Shown here in pieces: positions 1 to 52,900 of a stretch of 64,000 bases of DNA. Every line of letters starts with the position of its first letter. Position 1 is the first letter of the stretch. The DNA lies in NCBI RefSeq assembly GCF_032062105.1, contig NW_026929693.1:62001-126000 (forward strand). The letters run 5' to 3'. Source of the stretch: Saccostrea cucullata (lineage: Eukaryota). The position numbers and the translations under genes were made by a program. Below the pieces are notes generated by a model. The model saw only the letters and a list, made by a program, of their open reading frames with translations, was not told the origin of the DNA and searched no databases.

Positions 1-1189
1 ATTGAAATCTAACAGAATCATTACATGCATTTTTTCGTTCGCATTAAAAAATACGAAAATAAAACTTTTAAATGTCAATGAAAGACATAATCAAATATTA
101 AAATGAAAATGTATAAAAATATACAATCAAGTTATGGTACCAATGAAAAATATGAAATTAAAACTTTATTGAGGCCACTAATAATGCAAACACACTTTCA
201 GCTAATCAAATATTAAGATTATATTTTTGAAATGATATGGCAAATAAATAAATACAAATAAAATTAAATATCATTAAATCAAATACAGGTACGAATAAAG
301 CTTAGATTGCATGATATACATGTAAACAGGCCATTTTATAGTCCGTTAGACCAAGTATTACACGGGACAGTGTGCTCGCAATAAAAGCATTCTCGTGAAT
401 ATACCGGGTATGTAAAACTTAAGGAAGTTCTAAACACTGATAATGCTTCTTGGATGTAGAGAAAAATATATCTTATAAAGGTGCGCATATTGGAACTATT
501 TAGTTAATTTCAGCATAGGATACCGTCCTTTTTTTCGCAGGAAAAATGTTCAAAGACAATAGATTTTTCGTGAATAGAAATCACTGTTGTTTATCTAAAT
601 AGGGGAAAAATGGGGGAAAATAACCCATTTACTAAATCCTGGTCTAATATGATTCTAAGATTCTTTTAACGCATTAAAATTATGTAATTAACTGTAAATA
701 ACCATTTTTTTCTATTTCACTTTGAAGGGGATATCACACTAAACCCATCTACCCTATAAATATAACTTTTTAATGAGCAGTGTTTAGAGCTTCTTTAAAA
801 TTATATATAAAGTAGTTAACAAAAATCGTGCTTTTTTCTTTCAAATTCTGCTAGTAAATAGATGCTGTCTACCTCGCGAATAAAAAGTGTCGGGAAAATT
901 GATCAACAGTAAGCTACAGTATTCACATTTTCCAAACATGCAAAAATGTTTTTACCATTATATTGATTTTGTTTATCAGTATTAGATAAAAATTAATTCA
1001 TTAATAATTTCATAACATGTTTACTCAAATGAATTTTAACTTGATGCTTATTATACATTATTTTAAAAGCCCCTTGCATTTTTAAATACCTTCATAAAAA
1101 TTTTTTAAGTGCAAATGGACAATCAATAAACGTATTGAAATTTTGAGAGATATATTTGGGAGTTTTCGAAACACTTCTGTATTTTAAAG

Positions 1190-1836
1190 GAGGAACAGTA
1201 GATATCACCGTTTATGAATTACAACCTGATCTCAGCCTAATGGAACTGTACAGAGCTGGTGGAAGGACATGTGGAGGGACTCAGGTAGATGAGGCCTTCA
1301 AACAAATGCTGATCAAAATAGTAACAGCCCCCATCCTCGTTGAGTTTTCCCGCTCACATACAGCTGATTATGTGAATATGTATCGAGAATTCGAAATTAA
1401 GAAGCGTTCCTTTAAAGGTGACGCACAGGGCAAGGTCACCCTAAAAATTCCAATATCCCTGTTGGAAACTTTCGAAGAGAATACAGGGGAATATATAAAA
1501 GAGGCAATAGAGAAAAGCAAGTATTCAGGAAAAATCACATTGGTAGGGGACAGATGCAGAATAACAGCAGAAGTGATGAAGAGCTTGTTTGAAGTGGCAG
1601 GAGATCAAATTGTGGATCATGTTAGAGACCTATTAAAGAAATCGGAGATCTTAGGAATCAACAACATTATAATGGTCGGAGGATTTTCCGAGTCACCAAT
1701 TCTACAGGACATGATCAAGCAATCTTTTCCAGATATGAGAGTTATTATTCCCCCCGAGCCAGGGCTTGCAGTTCTCAAAGGGGCGGTGCTGTTTGGACAC
1801 AAACCTGTCACAATTTCTTCTCGCATTTCCAAATAA
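1190..1836 (+). CDS. HSPA12: HSPA12-like (HSP70 family 12) terminal exon, C-terminally truncated; upstream exons lie outside the window
   Basis: Phase-1 acceptor at 1188-1189 (ttttaaag|GA GGA ACA GTA GAT). Motifs GGTVDITV, CGGTQVDEAF, IIMVGGFSES and LAVLKGAVLFG. Stops at SRISK*, where HSPA12 proteins normally continue. Confidence 0.88.
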
Positions 1837-2325: not shown

Positions 2326-3730
2326 AACAAGAGGCCCACGGTCCTTATAGGTCACCTGAGTATATGTAACAACTTTCCAACAATTGAATTTGGTTTGTGT
2401 TTTAAACCAGAGGCCATGAAATTCTGAAAGTTTGGAAAGAAGCATCATTGCTTATCATAATAATAAACTAAGCATGCTTGCTTACTCTATTTACTTAAGA
2501 CCCAGAGGTAGATAAGAATAACAAAGAGAAAATGCACTTCCACTTTATAACCAGTTGTGCACCCCAAAGTAACCACTGACCCTGGGGCCAAATATTTAAA
2601 AAATTTGAAAATTTTATCATAAATTTCATTTCATCATAAATGATTGATTAATACCAAAGAGCCGATGTCAAAGCATTCATTCACTATGTACCCACCCCCT
2701 CCTCAATTTAGGAAATTAACCATTTTGCTATATGCACCTTCCTTCATCCTAAATATATAAACTTGGATCATAAGCATAATACCCAAAGTAAAGAAAACGA
2801 TTTTCAAAGAATAAATGTATTTTCAATATATAATCAAAAGAACCCCCCCCCCTTACACCAAATGGCAAAAACCCTGAAACAAGGGTCAAGAAATTCACAA
2901 ATTTGAATGAGGCATTATAACTATATATTAAGTTAGTTTATTTCATACCCAGGAATAGAGAAAACAACGTTGAAAGAATTAATGCATTTTCACAATATGA
3001 TCAATAGTGCCCCGCCCTAACACCAGAACCCCTGACCCTGGGGCCATAAAATTCACAATTTTGGAAGAGGCACTCCTGCTCATAATAACTATAATTACTT
3101 AGTTTATTTCATACCCAGGAGCAGAGAAGAAGATTTTCAAAGATTTAACGCATTTTCACTATGTAATCAATAGAGCCCCGTCCTAGCACCAGAACCCCTG
3201 ACCCTGGGGTCATAAAATTCACAATTTTGAAAGATGCACTCTTGCTCATAATAACTATATATTTAATTAGTTTATTTTATACCCAGGAGCAGAGAAGAAG
3301 ATTTTTAAAGATTTAATGCATTGTCAGTATACAATCAATAGAGCCCCACCCTAGCACTAGAACCCTGACCCTGGGGTCATGAATTTCACAATTTTAGCAG
3401 AGGACTCAATGTTCATTACATTCACACCAACAGTTTGCCTGATGTCCAGGAGTAAAGAAGAAGATTTTTAAACATTTCATTAATTTTAGTGATTTTGGCC
3501 CCACCCCTCAGGCCCCCCCGGGGGGGGCACCATCAAAATCACAATTTTTGTTCCCCTTCAACCATAGATGCTGTATACTAAATTTGTTTGAAATTGGTTC
3601 TGTGGTATCAAAGAAGAAGCTGAAAATGTTCAAATGTTAACACACGACGGACGACGGACGTCGCACGACGCATGATGACGGACGAAAACGGATAGCAATA
3701 GGTCACCTGAGCGACTCAGGTGACCTACAA
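2326..3730 (-). mobile_element. Non-autonomous Helentron-associated (HINE/pearl-like) element with internal 166-168 bp satellite array
   Basis: Terminal palindrome taggtcacctgag-cga-ctcaggtgaccta (3699-3727); matching subterminal taggtcacctgag at ~2348; (gacg)n microsatellite ~3645-3685; repeat units anchored at 2834, 3001, 3167 and 3335. Confidence 0.8.
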
Positions 3731-10240: not shown

Positions 10241-12117
10241 ATGGTTCCCATTAGGAGTGCGCAAGATGTAATCCGATGTGACATTTGTGAGACAGTTATA
10301 GTACAGAAGTACTGTGATTTCTGTCACGCGGGTATGTTGAGGAAGCATATAAGTCATTTCTCGGAAAATTTAGACTTTTTAAAGAAAATTAAGTTTGATA
10401 ATTTACCAAAACCTCTGAAAAATGTAAACTGTTATTAACTATTGCGTACAGGTAAAAGAGTGTCTAATGCAAAGACGTGCACCACCGCCACGGGATCACG
10501 TGACTTCTATTAATAGCAAAATTTTCCTAAATAAAAAAGCTAACAGAACAACAATATCCCGGAGTTTAATAATTTCTTTTACTAAATAATATAGTTGAAA
10601 AACATCACTTTTTCCTAAAAAGAGCTGCTAGAATCCCACAGTCTTGTCAGTAAAATAATTATTCCACACATTCACATGAAACCTTACCCAATGTTTTGAA
10701 TTTTTTGCATATGAACCGAGATTTCTCGTAAAACAATGCTTAACTCGGGATTCTAGCAGCACTTTCCAAGTTTGTCATAAGGCAAACTTTCCATTGATAC
10801 AAATCTTTTGTTTTGAAATATCCAGCTTATTGTTGTTTTGTTGCATTATTTTTGTCACGAACGACAGAGGAAACGCCGACCGGTATACGTATACAGCTGA
10901 CTTTTTTCGAAAGAGAATATAATCGATGAAAATAAATTATCATACCTGTTTATTTAACTGAACTCCATATGAATTTTACATAATGTCCACGATATTTCCT
11001 TTAAATCTCAATTTTACGTATCTTTGTACATGTCGTCTTAGCCAAATTCTCTTTACACGACATGATCTATTCCCAAGTTACTTGATGTACACATATGACG
11101 TCATCGGTGGTAGAATTTAATCGAAATGACAGATACATCATAAAGAAATAAAAACATTTTATTTTTGTTAATGTTTACACTATTCTATTCATTTTCTAGA
11201 GTTAAATTACATCTCTAAATACCAATACAACGAAAAGTTTTGTTATACAATTGACGTCATCTCACCGACTATAACGTCATAATGTAGCACTGCTTTAGTC
11301 AAGGTAGAATATTTTGTATGCTTCCTTATCACCCCTGCGCACGTCAATCTGCGCATTCCTTGTGTAGGAAAACATATTTCTGATGACTATGACAAACATA
11401 AAGTGGTCCCATTCCGACAAAAAAAGTCAACTTTAATTTTTCGTAAGTGCACAGCACATCAAACAAGAGACAGTGAGTTTCACTGTGAAACATGCGAAAC
11501 CTCTGTGTGTTCGTTGTGCACTATATCTGATAATATAAGGGACATGTCATTTTAACTCTTTCTGATCTCTTTTATCCAAAGAGGAAAGTTATTAGAAAAG
11601 ATGCTGAAGAATTAGAAAACTTACTTTCTCCAACGTATGCAGAAATTGCAAATGAAATAGAAACCCAGATAGCTAACTTAGATGGGGAATATGGTAATCT
11701 TACAACAACGTTGATCAAATGTGGAGATGAATGGCACAGAGAAGTCGACTTAATTGTCAAGAAATTAAGAATTGAAATAGAGAAAGAAAAATCGAAGCAT
11801 TATAGTATTCTAAAGGATCATTTGAAAGAAATTAAACAGATACAGACTATTATTGAACAAACACTTCTAAATCTTGAACAATTGAAAATTCAAATGATGT
11901 ATCGTTGACCATGGAATACATCTCACGAACCAAGGAATTAAGCAAACTGCCTCCAAAAATTCAAGTATCACTACCAACTTTTAGTTCAAGGACAATAGAC
12001 ACAGAGCAGTTTTACAAGTTATTTGGATGTTTAACACCATTATCCACCACAACAGAGGAAAATGGCTACAAAGTGAAGAAACCAAAGATAACGACAAAAG
12101 ACATGCTGGAGGCACGG
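10241..12117 (+). pseudogene. B-box/B-box/coiled-coil TRIM-like gene copy 1 (no NHL domain), interrupted and frameshifted
   Basis: MVPIRSAQDVIRCDICE...YCDFCH [insertion 10327-11339] VNLRIPCVGKHISDDYDKHKVVPF...CETCETSVCSLC, then coiled coil and LPPKIQVSLPTF. Frameshifts near 11530 and 11885, with substituted B-box Cys. Paralog of 19572-23529. Confidence 0.88.
10327..11339. mobile_element. Non-autonomous TIR DNA transposon with 2-bp TSD (EnSpm/CACTA-like) inserted in the first B-box
   Basis: Ends cgcgggtatgttgaggaagcatataa / ttgtatgcttccttatcacccctgcg; CA duplicated at 10325-10326 and 11340-11341; removal restores TGT CAC GTC AAT (C-H-V-N). Confidence 0.8.
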
Positions 12118-12288
12118 GTAAGTGGTGTCATTTTAACACAGTGAACACATTATTTGATCCCCCAGACATTGATACATACATTCTGATCTTTTGGGATTTC
12201 TTTCTTCTCTTCATTCTTGTTTACTGTATTCTCTGGACAAATCAATTCTCGGATAAGAAATCCTTATGATGTTTTTTTATCCTTTCAG

Positions 12289-14405
12289 ACTTGGGACAAA
12301 GAGAACATGCCCTCTACCAGAAAACCGCTGGTGGCAGCCATTGATTTAGGTACCACCTACAGCGGCTATGCATTTTCCTATAAACATGAATACGAAAACG
12401 ACCCTTTGAAGGTCAGCTTCTGCAACTGGGCAGCAGGCTCCCGGAGTCTATCGACCCTAAATACCCCCACCTGTGTTCTGTTCAATAAAGACAGGGTGTT
12501 CGACTCGTTTGTTTACGAAGCAGAGAATAAATATTCAGAACTGGCAGAGGAAGAGGAACATGAGGAGTGGTATTATTTCAAGAGGTTCAAGATGTCTATC
12601 TTTAACAGACAGGCAAGTTCATCTCTTAATCTGTGAAAATTGATAATTATTTAGAGTTAAGATTTTTCTTAAGGGGCCGGGAATTACTCCGTTTATAATG
12701 ACGTAATCCTCTGGGTATTCTTGTATTTCTTATCAATATTCTGTTAGGAGAGGAACCCTTAACTAATTTCTACTTGCTAATGTCCCCTGCTATTTCAATT
12801 CTAAGATACAGCCCTATTTTAAGTAAAGGTAGAAAGATAATTAAAATAGATACATTTGAGAAAAATATGTATAATGGTATTGGTAGAAATTTAAGGGTTA
12901 GAATTTGAAAAAAAATATATTAATCATGTTTGTAGTTTTTTGTGCATTGAAGATTCGATTTCGTATTGATCCTTTTTAATTAGCAGACTGAATGTCTTAA
13001 AAATGGTGAAGATGTTGTACATATTTCTCACAGGAACCACTTTCAAAAGCCATAAAAATAAAATCTATAGATGGGAAGGAGATGGTGGCTTTGGATGTGT
13101 TTTCAGCGGCCATTAAATTCCTGAGGCGTCACCTATTACATACTCTAGAACAACGAGCCGCAGGGATAAGAGAAACTGATATAGGTTGGGTCTTAACAGT
13201 ACCTGCTATCTGGGACGATCTTGCCAGACAGTTTATGAGAGAGGCGGCAGTTAGGGTATAATTGAGCTATACACTAGTTAAGGGTAATGTTAGCAACCTC
13301 AAATTAGATTTATTTTTGTTACAGATATTTTCATGAAATATATCTTAAGATTTCAGGGGGCCGACTGGGGTTTCCATTGCACAATAGTTCGCGCATCAAA
13401 GTCAAATAAGGCGTATCTATTCTTTTAAAGCACCCTTTCTTTCACAAAATAAGTAACATCTAACAAAATTAAGAAATTACGCGTTAAAAAGCTTTATTAC
13501 AATTTTATTAACTGATTCTAACAGCGATTTTTTAAATTATAGATTGAGGTCGTCATAGTGTGTTTGTGCTTTTAGGATAAACTGAAGTTTTTAAGAGGGG
13601 GTCATTAAGATGCCATAAAAGCATTTACTAAATTTATTTTTAGAATATCATTGACAATTATCTTCCTATTTTTGGCATAAAACTATTCTGTATCATATTT
13701 TGTAGTACTTCATAAAAACAGGAAAATATCACTTATTTTGACATTTTGAGATGCCTCCTCTGGAAAGCAGACGATAGCATTTTGTGTTTCTTCTGTTTAA
13801 TGTATATCATAATATTATTCATCACGTTTTATAACTTGAGCAAAAAGTATATTGTTGGATTTGTATAATTCGCTCTGAAGACCGAAAATTGTCATATAAC
13901 CCTGTACCTGTGGTCTGAGACGGTTCCCTAAAAATATCCAGACGGTAAATTTTCCCTAAATTTTGCACATATACTGGAGTCGATTTAAGTTACATATGGT
14001 AAAGAATTAAAGATTTCTATATTGTTGTTTTCACACAATGAAACCTCAGTTTGCTCTTTTTAAATTTTTTGTAACTTTAGAAATGTAAAGAACCCCGAAA
14101 ACTAAAAATAACTAATTTGCAATGAAAAACCACAAACCTGAGTTTAAAAAAGTACACTGTAGAGTTTTAATTGAGGATGCAGTTTGAAAACATCTTTTAA
14201 GAATATATTTGTTTAAGGCTTGCTGAGATGTTGATTTTTGTTTAGTCTGGAATAGCCGGGGACCAGTTACTGATAGCACTTGAGCCTGGAATGGCCTTGT
14301 TATACTGTAACCATCTTCCCATAGAGAAACTGAAGTCTGAGGCGGGCGTCCAGGGATTTGGTGCCTTTTCCAAGGGAAGCAAATACCTAATTCGGGATTG
14401 TAGAA
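12289..14405 (+). pseudogene. HSPA12: HSPA12-like gene, exons 12289-12612, 13034-13255, 14246-14405; final exon missing
   Basis: LVAAIDLGTTYSGYAFS, WVLTVPAIWDDLARQFMREAA, LLIALEPGMALLYC and YLIRDCR, with in-phase splice sites (first donor is GC). Eroded motifs (ALEPEAA-type to ALEPGMA, DCGG-type to DCR). No downstream GGTVD exon. Confidence 0.85.
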
Positions 14406-14430
14406 GTAAGTTTTTGTTTAAATACCCTTA

Positions 14431-14690
14431 GGCCAGGCAAAGTGAATTCCTTTGGTTCTCAGACCTTTTCTTCAAGAAATATGATGACTGAGGGAGGCAT
14501 ATTTTTTTTTTCTTTTCGTTGCCCCAAAACATAATGAGGCAGCTTTTTATATAGTACAAAACCTCAAAAAATGATGGGGGGTGTGATTTGTTGTTTTTAT
14601 TTTATTGATTTACCAATAAAAAGGGTCAATGAGGCACCCTTGGAAGAGATTAGGGAGGGCCTGAGAATCAAGAAATTATTTTTTTTTGCC
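14431..14690. mobile_element. MITE, PIF/Harbinger-like
   Basis: tta|ggccaggcaaagtgaattcctttggttctcagacc ... ggcctgagaatcaagaaattattttttttgcc|tta: imperfect TIRs with TTA flanks. Confidence 0.5.
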
Positions 14691-16163
14691 TTATGTATAG
14701 CACACCTGTTATATTATTATTACAGCATTCATCAAAAACATCTGTCTTACAAGTCAAGTGTTTCTAAAAAATATTTACTTATTGTATACCATTAGACTTC
14801 CGGAATTTTTCTATCAAGATTAAGGATTTTTTTCCTTTAATTAACTAATGTTTAGCAAAGTGGTTGAAATAGATTAAATCCATCCAGTCTCTTGATATAC
14901 TGTCAGAATTAAACAAAGTTTATAGAAATATATCTGTTTACCCTAATCATGACACAATGATTTAATAAGGATAAGCATATATGTACAGTACAATCTCTTT
15001 ATCCCAAACTCGATAGGACCAAAAATAAACTTAAACTATCCTAGAAATTAAGATATCAAATGTAAAATATTTAAATAAAAGTGATTGTGACATCAAAATT
15101 GCTTCGACCTATCCATGTTCGAAATACAAAAGTTTAAATTAATTGTATATAAAATATACACTTTCAGTTTTCTATCCTTTCATTCCCTTTTGGCAATCTC
15201 TGCCTTATACTTTTCGCATGTATTTTTTCAAATACTTTTTTTGTTTGCTATGATACAATGTATGGGCACTGCCTTTAAAGTTGGGTAGAGTTTCAGCACG
15301 ACTATTTTTTTTATTATGTACTTGTAACCGAGCAGGAAGACAGAATGGGTTTTCGTCATCTATTTATCTGTTTTAAGACAAAATAAGGCATTTACCTATA
15401 ATAACAAAGTATAAGCCAAAATGACAGAATACTGATACAAAAAATATGAAAATACATGTACGAGAAAAGGGTGAAAAAAATCACTAACCGTAAATGTTTA
15501 AGGAAAAAAATAACTATATAAAACCACATGTACTAGCACTGTATCAATTTAAATGAAAATCTTGCAGAATCAATATTATTTCCGTAAAGATACACCCTTG
15601 ACTGCAAAAATACAAAAGAAGTAAAACGTTCGGAATCTTGTGACATCTAATTCCAGATGAGCAAACAAACTTTCGGCTAATAAAGTTTTCATTTTATTTT
15701 TCTAAAAATGATATGAAAAAAAAATAAATGAGAAAAACGAATAAAAATGTTTAAAATTAAATGTCATAATATCAAATATAGGCACGAGTAAAGCTTAAAT
15801 CAATTGCATAAAATAAACAAGGTAAACTTATGTATAGCTCTAAAGACCATGTGTTAGGCAAAACAGTGTGCTGGCGACTAATCATTTTCTTGTTTATTAG
15901 CAAAACTTAAGATTCTATAGACTAGTGTTTTCTTGCTAAGAAAGAGTTCATCTCTGCCTTGCAAATAAGAGGTGTCGCGAAAATTGATAAAAAACTAAAA
16001 AAAGTGATCTACAGTATTCAATTTTTCCATGCATGACCAAAAATGTTTTTACTTTTGTATTGATTTTGTGTATCAGTATGAGATAAAAATTAATTCAGCA
16101 ATTGTTTCATAATTCAAATGAATTTTACCTTTATCTTCATTTTGAATTATTTTAAAAGCCCCT

Positions 16164-19100
16164 ACAAAGTGTTCTCATTAAACTAGAAATGGGAAGATCT
16201 GGAGATCTTCTCTTATTTATGATTTCAACAACTGCTGCATTGTCACAGTGAAATAAAATTCTTTTCTTGGACCACATATCCCCCATAATATGGCCGCAGT
16301 CACAATAGGATAAAGTTCTCTGAATGCTATCGAGATGGGTTGTTTCAATGTTATGGTTAATTCCTGTGGCCAGGACTCCGAAAACCATCTGCCTTGAAAA
16401 TAACCTCCAAATCATAGCATCGAAGAAGCGTCAGTATACAGTTCCATATCTGCATTACTTGTTAGATTTCTTTCGTAGAATACTGATACACCATTCCATT
16501 TCTCTAAGAAGACTAACCACATGTGCAGATCTTCTCTGCTTTGTTTTGAGAACTTTACATAATGATGTAGTTTGTTTTCTGTTGTGGATAAAGCTATGAG
16601 GTAGGATGTAAAGGCTCTGCCCGGTTGTATCACTTTGACGGCAAAGTTGAAATGGCCCAGTAACTGTAATAATTGTCTTTTTGTTACTGAGGACTTTTTC
16701 AAGAAGTCGGTTATAAAAGATCTAATCCTATCAATCTTTTCCAAGGGCAGTCTGGCCTTTATCTTTTCTGTGTCTAATATGATTCCCAAATATTCCAAGC
16801 AATTTGTTGGACCTTCTGTCTTCTTCAATGAAAGGGGGATATTAAGCCTCTTAATATCGTGCAAATGATAGCCATCGTTCTTTCACTAATATATCCTGGA
16901 TTGTCAATTGTCAAAAAGTCCTCTAATAAGTGAAATATATTGGAAATTCCATAGTTATTGTAGGCAATCCATACTATTGCTTGTGACAAATGGTCAAAAA
17001 TTTTTGGTGAACTTCTGCTGCCGAAAGGTAAGCGGACAAAATAATAATATTTATTTCTCTATTTAACGCACAACAAATGCCACAGTTCTGGTGTCACTGG
17101 AATAAGTTTGAAAGCATCACTAATATCGGTTTTACATAGAATTGCATTTCTTCCAAGTTCTTTGATCTTGTTAATGGCGTCGTCAATTTTCACATATTTT
17201 AACGAGCACTTTACTTTGTCTATCAAGTCATTGATACTATCCACATCTTCCTTTTGTTGAGGAGAAGACAAGTCCAAAATTAAGCGTTTTTTCCCCGAGT
17301 ATTTGCCTGTTGCAAGACCCAATGGACTTACTCTGTAAGTAGGGAATTCTAAACTGTCAAAAGGACATTTAACAAACCCTTTCTGTACTTCTTTCTCCAG
17401 GAGTTCATCTACTGTACTTGGATCCTCCATTGCAGATTTTAAATTTTTACACTCAAACGATGTGTCCATATGAAACTCATCACCGAAAAAAATATCAAAA
17501 CAAGATTAAAGACCATGAATTATGTAATTACGAATTCTTTGTCTGGGTGATTTTGTAATTCATGTTTTAATTGTTCAATGTTGATAGGAGTAGTGGCTTT
17601 AGGCTGGTTCTCTGAAGGTAGTCACAAGCTTTGATTTTGCTTTTTTGTCTTGGTCGTCTCCGAAGTTGCAGTTTTGCCTGTCTCTTGCTTGGGACATTTG
17701 TTATTTTCCATGTCCAAATGAAAAACAGATTGCACACACATGGGCTCTCCTACAGTATGGCAGTGCACATCTGTTGTAATTGAAATTGTTACATACCGGT
17801 TGACCCTCTACGTAAACAATCTGTCTGTCATAGCGATCTTTGTGACTTGAAGATCTTGTCTGTTTTGCCTTGTCTTTCTCTTCAGATTTTGTTTCAACAC
17901 TGCACATAGCTGTTAAATGAGTTGTTGATCTGCATGTTTCACATTTCCTGACTTCGGCACCAGCTACAACTCGCTTGAGTAGTTCCTCATCCCCTTTGCT
18001 CCAGTTGATGAGCACATGGTTCTGTTTCAGTGCATGCTATGGCACACTTTGCGGATAAAAATTTATGATATTCGTAAAACTTTGAAGGCCATACATTATG
18101 AACCTCAATAATGTGTGCCAGGTATGTGTCTAATTCTTCCTATCTCCAAGGATATGCGTTTGGTGCGCACATAATGCGCTTAAAACGCCCAAATGCAGTC
18201 ACAAATTCGCTTATGCTGAGATTTCGCGAGAGGCGCTTGTCTGGCTTGTCTATTTTGTCTGATGTTGGTGGTAGCTGAGTCTCGTACGCAGGTATTAATA
18301 ATGCACACAAACTTATGTCGTCCCCCTTTAAGATTTTCTTCCTGATGTCAGGATTTACTAGGTCTATGTGCCCTACTTCTTTCGATGGAACCCCTATATT
18401 AACAGTGTTAAGCGTACCTGTGTTTTGAATTTGCAATGAATGGAAGGTGTCGCTCCTGATGTTCCTCTTTCTGCGTTTGTCATTACTTTCTGGAGAGGAT
18501 TCTCTTCAGTCTTTTTATCCTTTTCCAGAAGTATATTTACTGTCTGTTGAAGCGCTGAGCATGATTGCGCCATCAATTGCAAAGTCGAAAGTAACTCTCG
18601 ATTGTCGCTGGCATTATTTACACTTGTACTTCCGCTTTGAGAGGGTTCCCCAGAACTAATAATGGTTTCTGTGACGTCACATCCGCCCAACTCTACTTCT
18701 TCCCGCGAAATCAAATTTGTCTCCTGGCGGTTGTCTTTTTCGAAATTTTCGTAGTATAGTTATCTCAATGCGGTTGCATTAAAACTTTTAGGAACGGAAA
18801 TTCCCATGGAATTGAGTTTTTGTCGTAGTTCTGAAACCGTCCAATTTCGTGGATTGGTCATATCTAGGCCTAATCCCAAAACGTTTTGTTCCGAACTCGG
18901 GCGAGAATCTTCACTTCTCTTTGCGTTTCTATGCGGCATATTGAACAATGTTATTTTCTTCACATCAAATACTTCACTTAGGTAAATGTCACCAAACTAC
19001 TATCCTAAGTACCCAGGAATCAAAATTTATGTAGCACAGACATCGTATCATATTTCAAGCTGTTGAGTTTTCAGTTTCTTCACTAGGGTAACGCACTTAA

Positions 19101-19322
19101 ATCATTAAGTCTCCCACTTCACATCTCGAAAGTTAAATCCAATTTATAGAAATATCTGTCCAAAAACGGAACGTTAAAGAATGTATTGAAAGTATGAAGT
19201 ATGATCAAATCTTTTCTGTGTATGTAAACACAACTGCTGAAACTTCGAAGATTGTAACCTGCTCTGATTGGTTAGATAAATGACGTGATTCTAGTATGTG
19301 GGCTCTTTGAGGGAAATTATTT
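16164..19322 (-). mobile_element. DIRS-order (Ngaro-like) retrotransposon, degenerate and 3'-truncated (tyrosine recombinase absent)
   Basis: Gag-like remnant with terminal zinc finger CNNFNYNRCALPYCRRAHVCAIC; RT motifs RVSPLG, KKRLILDLS, KTDISDAFKLIP, HLLEDFLT and LEYLGIILD; RNase H LYTDAS and FHCDNAAVV. Multiple stops and frameshifts. Confidence 0.88.
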
Positions 19323-19571
19323 ATAGAAAGCCTGTAAATTCTAGATAGAGTTGTTTTGGGTAATAAACTCTGATTATTAACATAATCAATATTTAATGTT
19401 TTAATGAATCAGTATAAAATGTTATATGAGGCTAATAATATATATGAAGTACTTCTAAATTACTTTTGTTTTCACAGACATTAAAAAAATCAATAAGATA
19501 AACAAAGTAGGTAAGGAAAAGATTCTTCCAAGATAAATGTACATTTGTACCTTTAACTTTTTAGATTTAAT

Positions 19572-22500
19572 ATGGATCCCAGCAGGAGTGCACAACATAT
19601 CATCCAATGTGACCTTTGTGAGGATGCTTTAGTACAGATGTACTCTGATTTCTGTCATGTCAATCTGTGCATTCCTTGTAAAGGAAAACATATTTCTGAT
19701 GACTATGAAAAACATAAAGTTGTCCCTTTCCAAAAAAGGAAATCAACATTAATCTATCCTAAGTGCTCAGCACATCAAACAAGAGACTGTGAATTTCACT
19801 GTGAAAGGTGCAACATTTCTGTGTGTTCTTTGTGTACTTTGTCAGATGCACACCAGTGGCATATTATTTCAACTCTTTCTGACCTCTTTTATTCAAAAAG
19901 AAAAGAAATTGAAAAAGACACTACAGAATTAAAAATACAATTTCGCCAACTTATATAGGGGTTTCAACTGAAATAGAAACTCAGTTAGCTGACTTAGATG
20001 GAGAATATGAGAATCTTACAACAACCTTGATAAAATATGGAAAGGAATGGCACAGAAAAATAGATTTAATTGTAGAGAAATTGAAATAGGAAAAATGAAA
20101 ACGAAGCATGAAAATATTCTAAAAGAGCACTTAATTGAAATATAAGAAGATACAGTTTTCAATTGATCAAACAATATTAAACTTGGAAAAAATTTATGAT
20201 TCAAATGAAGAAATACTTGCTATCCAAATTAGAAACAATGAAAATATACATGGCCTATCATTTAATGAGAAAGCTTCAAAAAATATCAAGATAGTCCAAC
20301 ATGCTGATGACTGCACAAATGCATTAAAAGACACCAACTCATTGGCAACTACTCTTAATATTATTCACCATTTTAGTAAAGTTGCTGGTCCGAAACTTAA
20401 TTTATCTAAAACTGAATGTATCTTAACTGGCTCTTTAATTGATGAGTATTGCAACAATAATGACCTATTCGGTGTAAAAATCGCAACTGAAAGTGTTAAA
20501 TCTCTTGGCATATACTTGGATCATAATAAAGATGTGTGCTATGAAAAAAACTGGCTAAGTAAACTTGAAAAACTTGAAAAAATCTTAAGTGTTTGGCGAA
20601 AACGCAACTTAACAATATTTGGAAAATGTACAATAATAAATACTTTAGCGATATCAAAACTTGTCTATAATGCGTTTATTTTACCTAATCCAGATAAAAA
20701 ATTCTTTAAAAGGGCTTCAAAAATCATTTATAACTTTCTATGGAAGAAAAGAGAGAGAATTAAACGAAATACATTGATAGGGTAAAATTGAACAAGGAGG
20801 AATAGGAATAGTTGACATTGAAAGTAAATTTTCTGCTGCAAAAGCTTCGTGGGTAAGAAAAATACTCGATAAAGATACACTCACACACTTTACTTTAAAT
20901 AGTCTATTACAAAAAAGTAATTTATCTATAAATGATATCATTAAAACAACGAGTTGCAATTTGAATGATACAAAATTCTGGGGATTGACTAATTTCCCAC
21001 AGTTTTATGTTGAAGTATTTTCAATGTTTAATAAGTGCAAAAAAATCAAACAAACCAACAAAATTTTGAAGGAAGAATTTTTATCCCAATTTATCTGGCA
21101 CAATAATTTATTCCGGTATGATTCAAAAACATTATGTTTTGAACAATGGATCAAGAGTGGTATATTATATGTAAAAGATCTTTTTGATGAAAACGGTGAA
21201 ATGCATGCGATAGATTACTTTTGGGATAAATTAAAAAGTAAAAACAATATATACTGTGAATATATTATGCTAAAAAAGACACTAAGACCTTTTAAATCAA
21301 GGCTTGATTGCTCCTATGCCAATTATATTAACATTCATAACAATGACTCGTTTTTGTTTGGAAACAATTGTTTTAAGTCGATCAAATCTTTAAAAAGTGA
21401 TTTTTATTATTCTGTTTTAATTCAATCCAAATTTCAGAATTCAATATATGAGAATAAGTGGAATAAATATTTTAACATAGATGATAAATCATTATGGAAG
21501 AATATATACATTTCAAAAATTTGTAATATGTATGACAAAAAGATTGCAGAATTCAATTACAAGCTGCTTAACTGTCTTTTAAATACTAATATAAGTGTTA
21601 GTAAATGGAATAAAGATGTATCACCAATGTGTGAGTTATGTAATGTATCCGAAAATAGTGAACATCTTTTATTTTCTTGTATAATTACATCTTACTTGTG
21701 GAAAAAAAAATTGGTATATTTTTAAAATTTAACGTTTCATGGAAACGCATTGTGCTGGTATTTTATAGTGATTTTTCAGAGAAAACTTGTATTTTGAATA
21801 ATCTTATATCATTTATTTGTTTTACAATCTATAAATATAAAATGAAGAGTCGATTCAATAATGAAAGAATGTCAGAAGAAAATTTGAAATCATATGCTAA
21901 AAATTGGCTTGTTTTATATAATTCTATTGTGAAAAAAACTGGTAAAATAAGAACCAACTTGTACAATGATTTAGCAAACTGTTAATAAAAAAAATATATA
22001 TAATGTAAAAAAAAATATGTGTAGACAATTGCCTATCCAACACATGAAGAAACCAGTCTTCATGTGTGGTAGCTAGGGGTCCTCATTATGGACAGTGCTG
22101 GTGTTGAATAGGACTCCCTTTGCTACCTGGATTAGTTTGAACTTTTTTTATTGTATAAATACTATACAAAACCTGCATTCAATATATATTTATTTATCTT
22201 CCCTTATGTAGTATACAATTTTTGTCTATTGCATCAGTTTATATGTGCTCTTAAAATAATTGCATTAGATTGAACAGATAAATTCGTGAATATAGAAATT
22301 GTTATAGAAAAAAAAAGCAAAATGCTTGTTATATATCTATGATACGTATAATACATTTATATATTTTTTTTTATTTCCTTCTCTATAGAAGCAATATTAC
22401 TACTCTGATATGAACATAAAAACATTAATTGTGATGTATGTTACAATTTATATTCAATATGTTGTATATTGCATATGCTTTTAATAAAGAGAAAAAAAAA

Positions 22501-23529
22501 TGATTCAAATGAAGTGTTGTTGACTATAGAATACAGTTCAGACACCAAGGACTTCAGCAGACTACCACCAAAAGTTAGAGTATCATTACCAGAATTCAGT
22601 TCTAAGACGATCCATTCGGCAAAGTTTTGCAAGTTGTTTGGATATTTATCACCATTATCCACCACAACAGAAGAAAATGGCTACGAGATGAGGAAACCGA
22701 AAAAAGCAACAAGAGTATTGCTAGAAAAACCAAAACTAATCACTACTATTAATACTGGGTACGAAAATCTCCGTATTGCTATTTGTATCAATAACAAAGA
22801 AATCTGGACGAGTGCAGAAGTCAACGAAATGAAATGTTTTAGCATTCAAGGCTTTAAAATAAGGAAAATAAAGTCGAGAACAGGGAAAATGCCAGGTGAT
22901 ATAGCAGTGACAGGTGATTGAGATTTAGTGTACTCTGATCCGATAACAAGGGTTGTAAATAAAGTGAAGAATGGACAGACAGAGGAGGTGATCAGACTAC
23001 AGGACTGGACACCTCTCAATATGTATGTTACCAATTGTGGTGATCTCCTGATTACTATGTACAACGTTTGGAAATCACAAACCAAAGTTGTCCGTTACTC
23101 AGGCTCCACAGAGAAACAAATAATCCAGTTTGATGAAAAGGGTAAACCTCTGTACTCAGGAAATTACAACATTAAGTACATCACTGAGAATGGAAACCTA
23201 GATATCTGTGTGGCTGACTGGGAATGGGCTCTGTGGTAGTGGTCAACAAAAATGGGAAATTCAGATTTAGATACACTGGTTATCCTTCTTCCTCTTTACA
23301 GAAAGATAGATTTGAACCTTCTGGAATAACAACAGATAGTCAGAACCATATTCTGACAACAGATAATAACCATTGTATCCATATCCTAGACCAAGATGGA
23401 CAATTTCTAAGTTATATAAATAACTGTGATCTGAAAGATCTATGGGGATTATCTACTGACAAAAACGACAACTTGTTTGTTGCTGAGTATGACAGTGGAA
23501 ATATTAAAAAAATCCAATATATTGAGTAA
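19572..23529 (+). pseudogene. B-box/B-box/coiled-coil/NHL beta-propeller TRIM-like gene copy 2, disrupted
   Basis: MDPSRSAQHIIQCDLCE...CERCNISVCSLC; NHL-like repeats ([28 protein letters not shown]). Frameshift ~19935, LINE insertion, in-frame TGA at 22919-22921, frameshift ~23225. Confidence 0.9.
20211..22499 (+). mobile_element. 5'-truncated L1/Tx1-clade LINE
   Basis: RT C-terminal half (EILAIQIRNN, QHADD, GPKLNLSKTE, LTIFGKCTIINTL), C-terminal CELC...EHLLFSC knuckle, AATAAA plus A-tail, and 15-bp TSD atgattcaaatgaag at 20196-20210 and 22500-22514. Confidence 0.93.
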
Positions 23530-24023
23530 AAAAATATATGCAGGGAAGGCCTTTAGTATGTGATTTCCTACAGACATATATCTGTTGCAATGAACTGACG
23601 ATGGATTTTTTTTAAATTTAATTTCTTTCCTGGTGGATTTCAAGGTCATGAGTAAAATTCCTTCACAGTTAAAAGAGAAATCATTCCTTTAACAAACATA
23701 ATTTTGAAGAGTTGTATTATGCCGTTAACTCACCAAACGCTTCTTTTGGAAAAATATGTCGACTCCTTATCACATCAAGACAATCGTTGTTGCATTTTCC
23801 AACCTTTTTAATCAGTTGCAAGAAAAATAATAATAAAAAAAAACCAAATAATGTCCCAGTTGAAATCACTTCTTTGGCAATGCTGACATTGGGAACGCCA
23901 AACTTTCCAGGCATTTACTGTTTCGAGATTCGCGGTTATTTTTGTCTGGCAAGCAGTGACTATTTTGAGGATAATCCTTTTTATGTCAGTCAACATATAA
24001 AAAAAATGTTATTAGAATTTTTA

Positions 24024-24790
24024 TTTTTATGCCCCCGTAATCGAAGATTTGGGTGTATATAGTTTTTGTCGTGTCCGTTCGTCTGCCTGTCTCTCTGTAT
24101 ATCGGTCTGTTTGTCCGTTTTTCTGCAAAACTCAAACCTTGTCCATATTTTTTAACTGGGTGGAGTTATAACTTTCATATTTCACATGTATATTCCATGT
24201 GACAACACCTTTTTTGAGTACCAGCAAATTTGACCTTTTGACCACTTTTATACAAGATTTTAAACATTGGCAATAACTTTTGAACAGTAAATAATAAACT
24301 TTTACTCTGAGCGTTTGAACAGTCGATATTAGAAGTTTCATACTTCACATATATATTCCTTGTTGCAATTTAGGCCTTTCGTTGGATACCAACAACTTTG
24401 ACACTTTAAACTTGACCTAGGAGATTTCCGTACTTATAAAAAAACTTTTACCTTGGCCCTAACTTTTGAACGGTAAGGGCTAGGGTTTTCTAACTTCACA
24501 CATACGTAATCCTTGCTAGGGATTACATATACTTCACATATGTAACCCTTGTGACATTAGACCTTTCTTAAGAAACCAACAACTTTGACCTTGGACTTTG
24601 ACTTACCTTTCAAACTTTTTCATTGGCCCTAAGTTTTGATCAGGTGGTGAGGGGGTTTCATACTTCACACCTGTTTTTCTTGTGATAAGACCCTACTTTG
24701 GGAACAATATATAATTTGCATTTATGAAAAGTTTAATCTTCGCAATGTTTGCATACGGGGGCACCTGTGTTTCAGAAACACATACTGTTT
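24024..24790 (+). mobile_element. HINE/pearl-like non-autonomous element (second family)
   Basis: Starts ttttatgccccc, then a gtcc/gtct microsatellite and degenerate internal repeats; ends cgggggca...tgtgtttcagaaacaca hairpin...tgttt. Confidence 0.7.
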
Positions 24791-25179
24791 TAAAAGGCAT
24801 TGAAGAGTAATGCCCCTGTAATCGAAAATGATTGCGTTAAACACAGAGTAAATTTAGCCCCCCCCCCCCAAAAAAAAGAAATTTTGCGAATTAATGCAAA
24901 ATATTTTTGTGTTTAATTGCAAAATTGTTGCGTTTAATCGCAAAAGTCTTGCTATAATCGCAAAAGTTGACATTTTTTACGTAATGTTTTGTGTTTCAAC
25001 GGAATGATTATTGCGATTAAATGGTATGTTTTGCGATTAAAACACAATTAATAATACGTCTTTCCTTGAACTGGGCCTTCAAGGTTTTTTTTTACTCCTC
25101 ACTAAAATATAAAAAGCAGTGGAGGAGAACCTTCAGGATTATTCACAACCCTTACAGTAAACACCAATCTTATTTTCCT

Positions 25180-25750
25180 ATTTCATGTAAAAGTTATTAA
25201 AACTTCAAATTTTTGGACGGGTTTGATTCTCACATCCTTGCACTATCACAAAGTTTGATTTTATTCTTAATATTTAAAATGACAATCTTGTGAGAATAAA
25301 TGAAAAATATTAAAACAACAATCCACAAAATTCAGAGTAGAGATGTTCGAAAGCAAAACACATCACTCAGTATATTGTCATTCCATGCAGTTGTGGTGAG
25401 CAGACTTTAACAATTGAACACACCCGGTGAATCGTAAATATCAACAATAACAGAGCTCGTGCCCTGTTTACAAAAAACTGCGTACATTTCACAGGTGTGT
25501 TCAATTTGCTAAACTCTGTACACAACACTAATCACGAAATGTCGATACTTGTAAAAGGGTCTTTGCTTTCAAATATTTCTACTCTGAATATAATAATTTT
25601 TCTTGATTAAAGTTTTAATATTTTTTTCAACATACACAACAAGAGTCACACTTCTCCTAAATGAATAAAATAAAAATTTGTGAGAGTGCAACGAAGTGTA
25701 AATCAAACACCTCCAAAAATTTGAAGTTTCAAAAACTTTTAGATGAAATA
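25180..25750. mobile_element. Foldback MITE (~570 bp degenerate palindrome)
   Basis: Nested inverted pairs: aaacttcaaatttttgga/tccaaaaatttgaagttt, ttcagagtagaga/atttctactctgaa, attgaacacacc/ggtgtgttcaat. Confidence 0.65.
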
Positions 25751-46900: not shown

Positions 46901-49900
46901 AGTGGCATGCGGTGAATGTAATTAGCTTTTCTTCTTAAATTTCTTAATCTTTACAGGTGATTTCTTATTTTTTGACTTTGATCTTCCTTTCCAAATACGA
47001 CTCGCTTTGATGAAACTCTAGATCTGAATGACGCTCAATGTTAGAGAGCTTTAAAATAATGCAGGAGAAGTGCTCACACCATGGGATGCATTGGTATTAT
47101 AACATTTTTATTATTTCATTAGTATTGAATTCTAGAGGATGTTACATGCTAGGAATTATATAGAATGTTAATATGAAGTGCCTTTATTTACGAATTATTT
47201 TGTCTCTATCATTCATTAATTTTTTCGGATTATTAGACAAACATGAAAATCAGAAGTTTAATTTGGATAGCCAGTTTGGTATGCATATTTATTTTCACTA
47301 AATGATTTCAAGAAAAAATAACTGTGAATTATACATGTAATTAAGTGAATGTAAGTTTAAATGCAATCTTTTTTTAAATAAATATTTGTATCTCGTTTGT
47401 TGTAAATTGTGGAACTAGATTAGAAATATTTCACAGGTTGTGTCTTAAAAAATATTTGAATACAAGTACATGCAAATTAAAGAAGAAGATAAATTCATCT
47501 TAGATAAGTCCTTATGACGTCATTTTAAAGCCAGGTACAAACAGGTGTATGCATGATATATTCAGCCACTAGTATCTGCAACTCTTCAAATGCCGTTTTA
47601 TTGTGAATTGTTTATTAAATGACTTCAGCTTTTCTACGGTCTTGCTGAAAGTCTATATTTCACAAATCCTTTGGCTGATACAATGACACCTCCCCCAATC
47701 CCTTGCCTTTCCTTGCAGACACACAAACACTTCTAATTTGCTAACCAAATGTACATATGCCATACATGCATACCGGTATCTAAAACTTTTAATGGACCCC
47801 ATGGTCAATCTTTGGTAATTTAAAATGTCATTGATTGGATATATGATACAGACTGATTTTTAAAAAGACGTCAATTAACCCCCTTCACCGCAGTCACGCA
47901 TTTTAACGCAAATACCATTTCCTATTTCTAACGCAAAATCACGCATATACCGTTTCCCCGCAATCACGCAATTTCACGCACTTAAAAAAGTTCATTTAAT
48001 CTTCAATTTATTGCCAAATTCCATCTATTTTATGCTTGCTTAAATCTCATAAAATAAGAAAAGTTATTTTATTATTAAATATTGCGTCATAATAGCGAGC
48101 GCGTCGCGAAGCGACGCTCGCAAAGCGAGCTCAATAGACTAACGTGTAAGAACAGAGGAAATTCGGATTGAAATCTGTACATACGTCAGCCAAATTTCTC
48201 TGTGAAACATTCCCAGAATTCCTGCACTACCCAATGTCCTTTGCGCAAATAAATAAATAAATAATAACGTAAAGCATAAAAGGCTAGATCAGTCTGTAGA
48301 AATCTTTCAAAGAAACAAAAAATAACTCTACAATGTTTTTCAACCAAAATTGCACTAGGTCTATAGTTTCAAACACACGCTCGGCTGTCTCCGTAAGCTC
48401 CGACGAGCTCCGTGACGTCGTGTGACGTCACACTAGTCGAGATGTCTCGTGCGGCTTAATTGATGTTTGAAGTAGCTGATCAATTTTTAGAGTGTTTTTG
48501 ATGGTACATGTACATGCGCTCGCCCCAACGGTCACACCGTAAAACATATCATTACTTACGCTAAACTTTAGAGAGACTTGTACCATGCTATAAAGTGCTT
48601 GCGGGGAAAAGGTAGCGTCATATTTCTATGACGTGAACATTAAGTGTATGTTGCGTCACAGATCATTAAGTTGTAAAGAGTTCATAAGTATTCAAAAAAT
48701 AAAACGTCGGAAAAAAATAACGATATATTTAGATTGAGCATGTCAGTAAAAGTCATAATGTTTGTCACATTGTCAAAGTAATTTCTGGCTATTATGTAAA
48801 GTGAGTTTCTCCATGGTTATATGTTGAAATCAATTTTGTAATGTTTTGCGTTGAACACAGTTATAAAAATAATTATATTTTGTTTTATTACATTTTGCGT
48901 TGTTCTGAATACAATAACTAAAGTCGCATTTACAACAAAAACGTATCTTATTACATTATGCGTTAATCCCATCGCAAATTGTAAAAGCGCAAAATGTCAT
49001 AATCATTACAGTTTGTGTTTTTACAATTTGAGTTAATCTCTACGCAAAATGTAATAAGCTAAAAAGGTAACTATCCCATTTAATTAAATTTTGCGTTTTG
49101 ATACATTTCTCTTTGTAACACAGCATTCATATTTACCTTTTCAAGTAATAGACATGTATTATGTCGATACATTGTAAATAGATAAACACTTTAAAATTTC
49201 GAAACATTTTTGCTACAATAAATAACATCAGTGTCAGATCAAGAAATCAATCCCAATAATTCGTGAAGAAATGTAGCATTTCAACAATTGTCTTAAGATA
49301 AGTCGCGATTAAAATTGAAATTACTTATTTTATTCACAGATATGCATATCCTGGCGTGGAGATAGAACTTTGAATATTTCATCTGCCGTACCCGCACCAC
49401 TACTTAATTTCATTGAAAAGAGAAAGAATCAATCCGATCCGGAAACAATTTCTTTTTTCACACACAGAGCAAAAGTTTTCAATTATACTAGATTAATTCA
49501 GAATAACTTCACAAAGTTCCTCATCAGCAGTTATCTGACATTTTGTCCAAATAAACCATTGTGTTACGATCAAGGTGCCTTTTATCAAAATTATATGTTT
49601 CAATTTAATGGAAAACACCCGCTTTGTCGACCATGTAGCTGTGCAAATGACTGTTACAAGAAACATGAGTGTTGTGTATCAAAATACATCGCTCAAATAA
49701 ATACTACTCAACACAACCTTCATAACACCAGCGTTCCTATTAAGAAAGATGAATCGTCTTTTTCTTGTACAAGAACAGTATTGGGTGAGATTTATGATGA
49801 TAGAACAGGACAATCATTACAAATAGCGCCTGCAGCAAGATACTGGATAGTGGCAAAGTGTCCAAAGGATTACCCTCCAAACAATGTATGGAGAAAGTGC

Positions 49901-52900
49901 AAAAAATTTTTACCCATAAAAATGCTTCAAAGTGAGGAGCTGCAAATACCGGTATATTCAAGTAAAACAAATGATAGTTACCAAAACGTGTATTGTGCAC
50001 AATGCTTCGGTGAGAAACAGGAAGACCTTTATCCATGGAGAAAGATTATTGTGACAAACAATTACACAGAATTGAACAGACAAGAAAACTATTTTAATCT
50101 CGCTTCGTCAGACCCAAAGTTTACCCTAATTCTATACCCACCTTCGTTTTTAAAAGAAAGCTTGGTATGTAGTTTACCATCCATTTCCAAATGTAATGAA
50201 ACAGGCCTTTGGGACCGATTAGATAGCACATTAAAATGGGCTTGCGAGACAATGCCACAAGTACTTAACTATTTATTTAATAGAAAGACATACAAAAACG
50301 TATACTGCGTGATGTGTAACACATTTTCTCCAGAATATACAATACCGATCACCGTGACCAGTGGCTCTCCAGTAGAAATAACACATTATATCTTAGATGA
50401 TTTCCGACAAACCCTTGGCTTATTTCCCTCATTGCTAAGCTACTCAGCACAGAAGACTTTTCATGATTACAGTGTTGAAAGACTTTGTCCATCAGAGATG
50501 GTCTATAGCCCGGTTTTGGTGAGTACCCATTACACCGTGTCAGCTATTAGAAATTGAAATCGTTCTCCATTTCACTAATACTTTATGCCATCTAAACGAT
50601 CAAATTTTCATAAAAATGTAAATTATAGTGTAGAAACTAGTGTTTATTATTAAGGTATGTTTTCTTAAGCCAATAGTTCTGTGTCATTTTTTCCCCAACA
50701 TTGGAAGTGTTAAGAATACATTTGCATCCAAAAAGAACTTACATAGGAATTGGATTATCCTTTCGTATAGGCTATAAACATTAATGTTAAGCACATCATT
50801 AAACTACATGTGTATCAAAGAATACATGCCAGAAAGAGAAGGTCGGGACCATATTTATCAGAAGGCAAATAGAGTTCTTTCACTAGATGAGACAAATTGT
50901 TTGCTGTATATTTCTTTTCTACAGTTTTTGTCAGCGAATTTTCTTTCTATATACTCAGTGTAAGGATATCCGATCCTCAGTTTACCTGGTTTGATTACTC
51001 CTTCATAGCACCTTATCCCACCTCTGTTGAATTTAGCGGTCCGTGTTTTCCCTGTTCCTAATTTTTATTGTTTCAATAGACTTATTTGATTGTTATTTTA
51101 TTTAACCTGACATCAAGGTCTTATGTGAATAAAACAACCAATGTAAGTTGTGAATTTTTAACATAAAAATGAGTTATAAAGAGCTTTGTGAAATATTTTT
51201 AAAAACAACGGTTTCATTTAAATTTTCTACAGAAACACCAAAAGATTTTTTAGAACGCCTAATCATAAAAATATTTAAATCTATCTTCAGATAATTGAAC
51301 TTTGAACGGTTTATATGAATTACACGTACTTTTTGTTTCTTTACAGGTAGGTTCAGTCCTATTACAGATACATGTAGGTGTAATTGAATGATACCTATTT
51401 TTAAATCAGTCGATACGTAAACATAGGTAGTGACTGTCCCTTCGCCAAGCGCTCGACATTAGAAGTGAAAGTCACGGGTCTTTCGGATATGACCTTAAAA
51501 ACGTAGGTCCGGTGTCACGGTAGGCATTGGCACGATAAAGAACCCTCACTGTTCAATGGCCCTGAGTCCCGAGTATAGGTCTAAATTTGAGGCCCTTCAC
51601 CTGCATACGGTTACGTCTCTATATGAGTGAAAAACTCTCTAGAGGGACGTTAAACAATATTCAATCAATCAATAAATCATTCGAAGATAAGTACAGTTGA
51701 TTTTAACAAGGAACAATTAAAACACCCCCCAAATGATCTGATGCTACATGTAGGTACGAATTAAATATACCTGGGTTATGTTCGGTTACGCCTATATTTA
51801 ATTTTTGGAAAATCTTCATTTCTGTTACAAAGACAACCCTGAAATCCACTGAACCTTACCTATCTACAAATGAATTAAAGATAGGATTTGTCCAAAATGT
51901 CGTAGACAAATTTTTAACATTGTACATGTAAACAGTCAAGCAATGCCCCAGTGTGATGTGGGGGATCATTGATTACACAGTGAAAATGCACTATTTCTTT
52001 AAAAATATCTTTTTCTTCTCCTGCAATATAAGCCATGAAAGTGAGGAGTTAAATAATAATAATGAGCATGGACGCATCTTCAAATATTTTAAATTAAATG
52101 GCTCCTTGGTAAAGAGTTTGGTTTTATACTGGGATAGGTTGCTTTGATTTTACAGTGAAAATGCATTAATTCTTTGAAATGTATTTTTCATTTCAGGTAA
52201 GATGCCTGTCAATATTTTGTGATTCTGAATATGCTCAAAGAGGGCCAAAATGTCACCGTCGAATTTCCAATGACTTCTCTGGGCCCTATGTCATACGTGC
52301 ATCACTGTGCACTACAAGGTTCCTCACTTTGAATTTGTTAGATGAGATAAAGAAACAGATGGTAGAAAAACTGTTGAATGTACCCAGATTCTCTCCCAGG
52401 GAAACTGACATCCTATTTTATTCGCCATTTCTCACGAGGTCCTATAAATTTTGCTATCCATTCGTAGCAAGTTTTCTTCCTGCTGGTGTGACAAACATAT
52501 TTGCCGTAACAAACTACTTGTTGACGTTTACAAAAAACTTAACTGATGGTCTTTTTTCGAAGCATGTACAAATCAAACAAAATGGTGTTGATAGTAACGC
52601 TTTCAAAACAATGTCTCGTAAATCTGGGCCTAAAAAACACTTTTTCCGCAGGAATAAACCGCCTCCTTTTGAAAATAATGTAACACACTGGCAACACTGT
52701 CCAAAGATTTACCTACCAGCAAGCTATCATCTTAATCATTGCGACTTCGAAATTTGCATCAAAGAATATGACATTTGTTTTGAAAGTCACATGGCAAAAT
52801 TTGACCAAGAAGACACTGCCATCGCTTTATGTTTAGATGATTATAAAAGGATTGTTGATAATTATATGAGAAGAACTACTGGCGAAGATTCAACAGAAAC

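Follow-up and report, generated by a model that had tools for sequence, protein, structure and literature searches.

A family of B-box/coiled-coil-HSPA12 fusion genes in the oyster Saccostrea cucullata

The oyster Saccostrea cucullata carries a family of genes in which the NHL propeller of a TRIM-like protein has been replaced by the nucleotide-binding domain (NBD) of an HSPA12-type HSP70. DNA of a duplicated HSPA12B gene, with its introns kept, ended up downstream of the B-box/B-box/coiled-coil exon of a TRIM-NHL gene without a RING, and a new donor at the propeller boundary splices that exon in frame to the HSPA12 acceptor. One ancestral deletion of ~11 nt, followed by a stop, removed the HSPA12 tail, and the resulting gene of 735-740 aa multiplied in tandem. 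Some copies have died, among them the one in the window (the whole stretch of 64,000 nucleotides that was analysed). The fusion falls outside strict TRIM, as it is without a RING, and outside strict HSP70, as it is without a substrate domain.

In the window copy the donor GTAAGT begins at 12118, directly 3' of the codons for MLEAR, and the last base of the acceptor TTTCAG is 12288. The GT-AG intron between them is 171 nt long and phase 0/0, and the exon downstream opens into the HSPA12 phosphate-1 motif (Table 1). This is the junction put forward in the original prediction, which was made from sequence alone, and it held. So did the claim that the TRIM frame stops at the entry to the NHL propeller: comparison with TRIM-NHL paralogs puts the end of the frame at the point where they enter it. 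Could this joint be a coincidence? The donor is kept in every aligned copy that retains the TRIM tail, the intron ranges from 163 to 181 nt among copies with all three frames represented, and it is gone from contigs of presumed RNA, so the junction exceeds chance. The window sequence contains zero N. Searches with the window copy took one exon at a time, those with whole proteins started from database records, and the selection analyses also treated each exon separately.

Table 1. Features of the window copy and its surroundings (window coordinates)
Feature	Position	Strand	Evidence
Final exon of the sister fusion gene upstream, XP_062620265 (P0124), which is intact	1190..1836	+	Identical to P0124 C-terminus; ends at family-wide stop, NBD end
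Start codon and first part of B-box 1, TRIM-type exon	10241..10326	+	77/100 nt vs 5' end of intact sister exon; translation
Non-autonomous DNA transposon, 1,013 bp, imperfect terminal inverted repeats, CA target duplication	10327..11339		At least 40 full-length genomic copies, 86-94%
Rest of B-box 1, B-box 2, coiled coil, linker	11340..12117	+	PF00643; 691/779 nt vs sister L006, two 1-nt gaps
Fusion intron, GT-AG, phase 0	12118..12288	+	Only at 15 family loci; skipped in contigs of two presumed RNA runs
HSPA12 exon 1 (phosphate-1 loop), then GC-AG intron common to parent gene	12289..12612	+	83% aa vs parent on C10522; splice sites
HSPA12 exon 2	13034..13255	+	Homology; splice sites; joints seen in presumed RNA contigs
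HSPA12 exon 3; expected next exon absent from window copy	14246..14405	+	Homology; splice sites
Multi-copy retroelement remnant, at expected site of window copy's last exon	16203..19060	-	95-96% copies on C7251 and C10314
Neighbouring B-box/coiled-coil/NHL gene, donor family, with stops	19572..23529	+	77-85% nt vs TRIM exon; NHL Pfam match

Splicing can be seen in contigs from two presumed RNA runs, belonging to two separate studies, which skip the 171 nt at the fusion junction. One junction contig does so with clean GT..AG ends and 145 and 197 nt on either side, and presumed RNA contigs also skip the next two introns. Read depth is 4 in the fusion intron versus ~1,600 in the flanking exons. 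The junction contigs are ~90% identical to the window and have neither the transposon nor the frameshifts of its copy, so they derive from sister copies. The junction-spanning reads that the original prediction had proposed to look for were found in this form, as contigs for sister copies only; the window copy's own junction is seen in none of the RNA contigs listed. That the runs are RNA is a guess, and their source organism is coded.

Elsewhere in the S. cucullata genome, the junction region has end-to-end matches at 10 other places (79-85%) and partial matches at 4 more. The fusion intron is present at 15 places, all of them family loci, and has no match outside the family. Several of these places are pairwise identical or nearly so and are probably haplotigs, leaving ~12 loci that carry the junction. 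An open 288-codon B-box/B-box/coiled-coil exon is present in 7 distinct sisters, each ending at the same GTAAGT donor, and all five exons are open in at least five loci. Four fusion proteins, of 735-740 aa, are in RefSeq: XP_062620265, XP_062599964, XP_062620275 and XP_062618636. All carry PF00643 and an HSPA12 NBD, and 3/4 also match PF00012. The genomic exons as read are the exons of these models; in the C4429 copy, the exon 3/4 reading is one glycine shorter than the RefSeq model. Intact sister copies had been predicted as the functional form, and their intactness held. A polypeptide with both B-box and HSPA12 NBD, sought among bivalve proteins, was found intact. The gene to which the exon at 1190 belongs, XP_062620265, also starts with B-boxes. 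RefSeq names the four proteins only "HSP70 12A/B-like", so that the fusion was already present in its models, unrecognised.

The oyster fusions begin directly with B-box 1, and no RING Pfam match was found in them. The sister exon encodes two B-box stretches (PF00643, E 4e-14) with the Cys/His pattern kept, and a full-length AlphaFold model too weak to rely on (pLDDT 53) has long helices after them, at ~102-211; position and homology fit a coiled coil there, so that this part is assigned only tentatively. The sister TRIM read-through frames have no exact match in the protein collection searched. Further copies have degenerated: most of the TRIM exon is deleted in L012, L013, L015 and L016, and in L016 B-box DNA is joined straight to mid-intron sequence. 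P0061 (XP_062579147) is a fusion copy with a frameshifted TRIM exon that RefSeq annotates as a stand-alone, NBD-only HSPA12, in a model whose start is the former start codon of the parent.

The window copy is a pseudogene. The transposon disrupts B-box 1 in this copy only and is absent from the sister-derived presumed RNA contigs; alignment of the TRIM exon to sister L006 reveals 1-nt deletions near 11533 and near 11880; and the last HSPA12 exon was not found anywhere downstream in the rest of the window. That this copy is disabled had been predicted, and held on these three grounds. The retroelement remnant at the expected site of the missing exon has gag-, RT- and RNase H-like pieces, and we take it to be DIRS-like; its short pieces gave no Pfam match. 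The intron sequence preceding it matches window 849-1074. The neighbouring gene of the donor family is itself broken by a LINE at ~20135-21990 (RVT_1, zf-RVT). Other features of the window lie apart from the fusion copy. A 166-bp tandem repeat (x3) is found downstream of the sister fusion gene, at 2913-3407. The interval 31600-36720 has an integrase (rva_4) ORF at 34198-35466 (-) between mirrored arrays of ~23 copies of a 21-bp unit, and resembles a single transposon with repeat-rich inverted ends. Two long ORFs at 49370-53642 (+) are like an adhesion-type 7TM receptor with a Cys-rich ectodomain, with no Pfam match at E 0.01.

The parent of the HSPA12 half is a single conserved gene, the HSPA12B gene XP_062615745 on C10522, which has orthologs in S. 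echinata (96-97%) and M. gigas (85%). The fusions have the acceptor, the intron positions and a GC-AG intron in common with this parent, which shows that the HSPA12 copy moved as DNA. The TRIM part is 74% identical at the amino acid level to a RING-less B-box/coiled-coil/NHL member of S. echinata, over the region searched. The 171-nt intron gave no alignment above shuffles with the parent's upstream 1.5 kb or with the NHL-coding DNA of TRIM-NHL loci. In a tree of NBDs the fusions form one clade (99) adjoining the S. cucullata parent (92), with terminal branches of 0.12-0.29 for the fusions versus 0.01 for the parent. This tree suggests, with moderate support, that the fusion arose at about the time S. 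echinata split off or later. The ~140-aa substrate-binding-like tail is missing: every copy read ends at the NBD, with the deletion of ~11 nt just 3' of it and, in most, a stop at that codon. This count covers only the copies read, and some exons were left out, such as the last exon of the C23236 copy. The predicted swap of the NHL domain for an HSP70 ATPase domain is supported, with additions: only the NBD was fused, the tail was lost, a RING is lacking, the acceptor was taken over from the parent gene, and similar predicted fusions exist in other bivalves.

The TRIM exon has a maximum likelihood (ML) omega of 0.42 (p 5e-14 against 1), and the four NBD exons have ML omegas of 0.55, 0.75, 0.80 and 0.66, the first and last significant (p<5e-4) and exons 2 and 3 not distinguishable from neutrality. 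Six copies have a last exon with no stop before the shared end, where neutral survival would be 0.07-0.14 per copy. In the NBD, model M2a fits better than M1a, with 8% of sites at omega 2.8 (p 4e-4). Only one site exceeds 0.95 posterior, and the test was run without a control for gene conversion, which between tandem copies can inflate M2a. In the TRIM part M2a is no better than M1a (p 0.12), giving no positive selection there. At 92 positions that are at least 95% conserved among 150 mostly bivalve HSPA12s, the fusions have 9-16 changes versus 0-1 in orthologs. The changes at invariant sites are clumped (p 0.002), and W268, W173, K104, F23 and E202 are each replaced by 3-4 different residues. 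W173 and W268 align with the F146 and L227 motifs of DnaK, whose roles are those of the hinge or of coupling between ATP and the substrate domain (PMC4595643, PMC3836694). In phosphate-2, the third glycine or the threonine is altered in three copies. The nucleotide-site residues D22, G24, E200, D238, D245, G269-270, E309, K312, R313 and G404-405 are kept in 5/5 copies scored. The NBD is a complete actin-fold, with phosphate-1, EP, phosphate-2 and adenosine motifs present, and is predicted by a structural model to have the whole HSP70 NBD fold (pLDDT 89; Foldseek E 3.5e-18 vs the BiP NBD). It probably still binds nucleotide, although this is inferred without ATPase or binding data.

Gene models from other bivalves point to further fusions of the same kind. 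An index-free search found a RING-B-box-B-box-coil-NBD model in Potamilus streckersoni (KAK3594916), along with a second Potamilus fusion model; a RING is present in Potamilus protein P0253. Ruditapes XP_060608500 has a region that is B-box-like by eye, with no Pfam match, then a coil and an NBD. All the fusions from Potamilus and Ruditapes stop at the NBD boundary and are without the tail, and in Potamilus a GTAAGT donor closes the TRIM exon. In the tree, the Potamilus fusion NBD has as its sister an HSPA12 of Potamilus whose locus tag is close by, and trees that force all fusions into a single clade are rejected (AU p 1e-4 and 4e-4). These predicted fusions arose independently of the oyster family, with the reservation that the gene models have no RNA support in this analysis and that P0323 may be a merger of neighbouring genes. 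A glutamate at the third glycine of phosphate-2, found in 0/314 tail-bearing HSPA12s, is present in B-box fusions of three genera; it was spotted after the fact, and this glycine varies in tail-less proteins generally. No fusion was found among the annotated proteins of S. echinata, Magallana, Crassostrea or Ostrea, where only top matches or limited candidates were seen and absence is unproven. As a separate observation, the 22-kb TRIM-HSPA12 intron in Potamilus (L068 about 13000-29000) has many ORFs like those of a Polinton/adintovirus-type insertion. HSPA12 is also fused to HEPN_DZIP3, CARD, PH and Death domains (P0274, P0357, P0369 and P0374, from Mya and Logan contigs), and these Death, CARD, HEPN or PH fusions mostly retain the tail; HSPA12 seems to be an often-shuffled module. 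Three ESM Atlas clusters contain both HSP70 and B-box members, with taxa not recorded.

How does the oyster fusion compare with known systems? It is best classed as a variant of the TRIM C-terminal domain swap. As in TRIMCyp (TRIM5-cyclophilin A; PMC6677749, PMC2279257), the C-terminal recognition domain was exchanged for a host chaperone domain by a new in-frame splice, with repeated independent origins. Unlike in TRIMCyp, the partner is an HSP70-type NBD that arrived as intron-bearing DNA, not as a retrocopy, the oyster proteins lack a RING, and no antiviral target is known. Oyster RING-less B-box/coiled-coil/NHL proteins (TRIM2/3-like) share with the fusion their first exon, the context of the start codon, both B-boxes, the coiled coil and the linker, but in the fusion the NHL propeller is replaced exactly at its boundary. 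Relative to the expanded bivalve HSPA12s (HSP70-12), the fusion NBD is 69-82% identical to the parent's ortholog, with the same intron positions and the whole NBD fold; the fusions differ in having gained a 288-aa B-box/coiled-coil N-terminus, lost the ~140-aa tail, altered relay residues and evolved much faster. HSP70 and B-box are variable domains of TRADD-N proteins in oysters and sponges (Kaur et al. 2021; PMC8195603), and HSPA12 has been found fused to Death, CARD and HEPN domains (PMC8195603). These TRADD-N/Death-domain proteins likewise use an HSPA12-type domain as an exchangeable part of immune-type architectures in sessile marine animals, and a B-box/coiled-coil-HSP70 NBD protein was not found in the relevant passages of that paper. 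Plant NLRs with integrated decoys join a copy of a host domain to an oligomerising scaffold, with catalytic or allosteric constraint lost. By analogy, the fusions would also place a conserved host domain copy on an oligomerising scaffold, although they have no NB-ARC/LRR and no effector has been shown. The original prediction did not recognise the architecture as one described before. No description was found in the literature searched, where no text joins HSPA12, B-box and bivalve, and a survey of oyster HSP70s mentions neither B-box nor TRIM.

TRIM-type genes are often involved in immunity. TRIM coiled coils form antiparallel dimers, which B-box 2 links. In the role proposed here, coiled-coil dimers clustered by B-boxes would display two HSP70-type NBDs where NHL propellers once were. 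The NBD would bind nucleotide but be uncoupled from any chaperone cycle, none being expected without a client domain and with altered relay residues. Its proposed task is that of a diversifying bait or sensor: proteins that bind to HSP70-family NBDs or modify them, pathogen proteins most probably and host co-chaperones possibly, would be captured and either trapped in TRIM assemblies or passed to RING-bearing partners, for signalling or sequestration. The structure, the splicing, the truncation, the selection and the independent origins rest on the evidence above; an immune role, like binding and its partners, is inference. With no binding, ATPase, localisation or infection data, this TRIMCyp-like role, the most likely of those considered, could prove wrong as readily as right. 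Loss of relay residues is equally expected from plain release after tail loss, many copies are dead, and without a RING any output needs an unidentified partner.

Other readings have to be weighed against it. The fusion could be a real protein that acts on the oyster's own chaperone/TRIM network, for instance by sequestering HSPA12 co-factors or by forming heterodimers with TRIM-NHL as a dominant negative in stress. In favour of such a host-side regulator are the retained nucleotide site, the likeness of its coiled coil to the one in the large TRIM-NHL family and the usual tie between the HSPA12 expansion and stress (PMC11268181). However, host-only partners leave the positively selected class, the 12- to 29-fold longer branches and the birth-and-death turnover unexplained, which makes this reading unlikely. 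Equally doubtful is that the NBD is a passenger: a promiscuous TRIM cassette would capture downstream exons, and selection would keep the B-box/coiled coil while a slowly decaying but stable NBD rides along. The NBD omegas of 0.55-0.80, with exons 2-3 near neutral, and the excess of changes at invariant sites speak for this. Against it, the last exon has omega <1 and is uninterrupted up to a shared end in 6 copies, although a stop there would escape nonsense-mediated decay; the changes are clumped and spare the nucleotide site; and the same boundary recurs in other genera.

An artefact, in which two adjacent dead genes happen to be in frame or an assembly or annotation step has merged them, is all but excluded. 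The window copy is indeed dead and its own junction unseen, but the junction is present at at least 12 loci on several contigs, spliced contigs come from two studies, and the frames stay open despite frame-shifting intron indels and are under purifying selection. A related alternative, raised with the original prediction, was that a deletion had joined an already dead TRIM to an ordinary 5'UTR intron of HSPA12. It fails because 7 sisters keep an open TRIM exon, which evolves under purifying selection, and because the intron cannot be aligned to the parent's upstream intron.

Bivalves have a large HSPA12 expansion that is commonly put down to heat stress, without much of a mechanism. In the family described here, one of its branches became attached to a TRIM scaffold, shed the client-binding half, and went on to multiply and diversify; gene predictions from other bivalves suggest at least 2 further joins of this kind. 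The family adds another natural case of the TRIMCyp design to the first, and cautions that oyster HSP70 gene counts include non-chaperones. The four RefSeq accessions make up a defined, testable family for questions of HSPA12 binding and immune role. Beyond the bait or sensor role, a bolder reading remains possible: bivalves may repeatedly use a tail-less, allosterically unwired HSP70-type NBD as an integrated decoy on TRIM scaffolds, guarding the chaperone system against pathogen proteins. If true, this would be an animal counterpart of plant integrated-domain receptors, and would give a function to part of the unexplained HSPA12 expansion.
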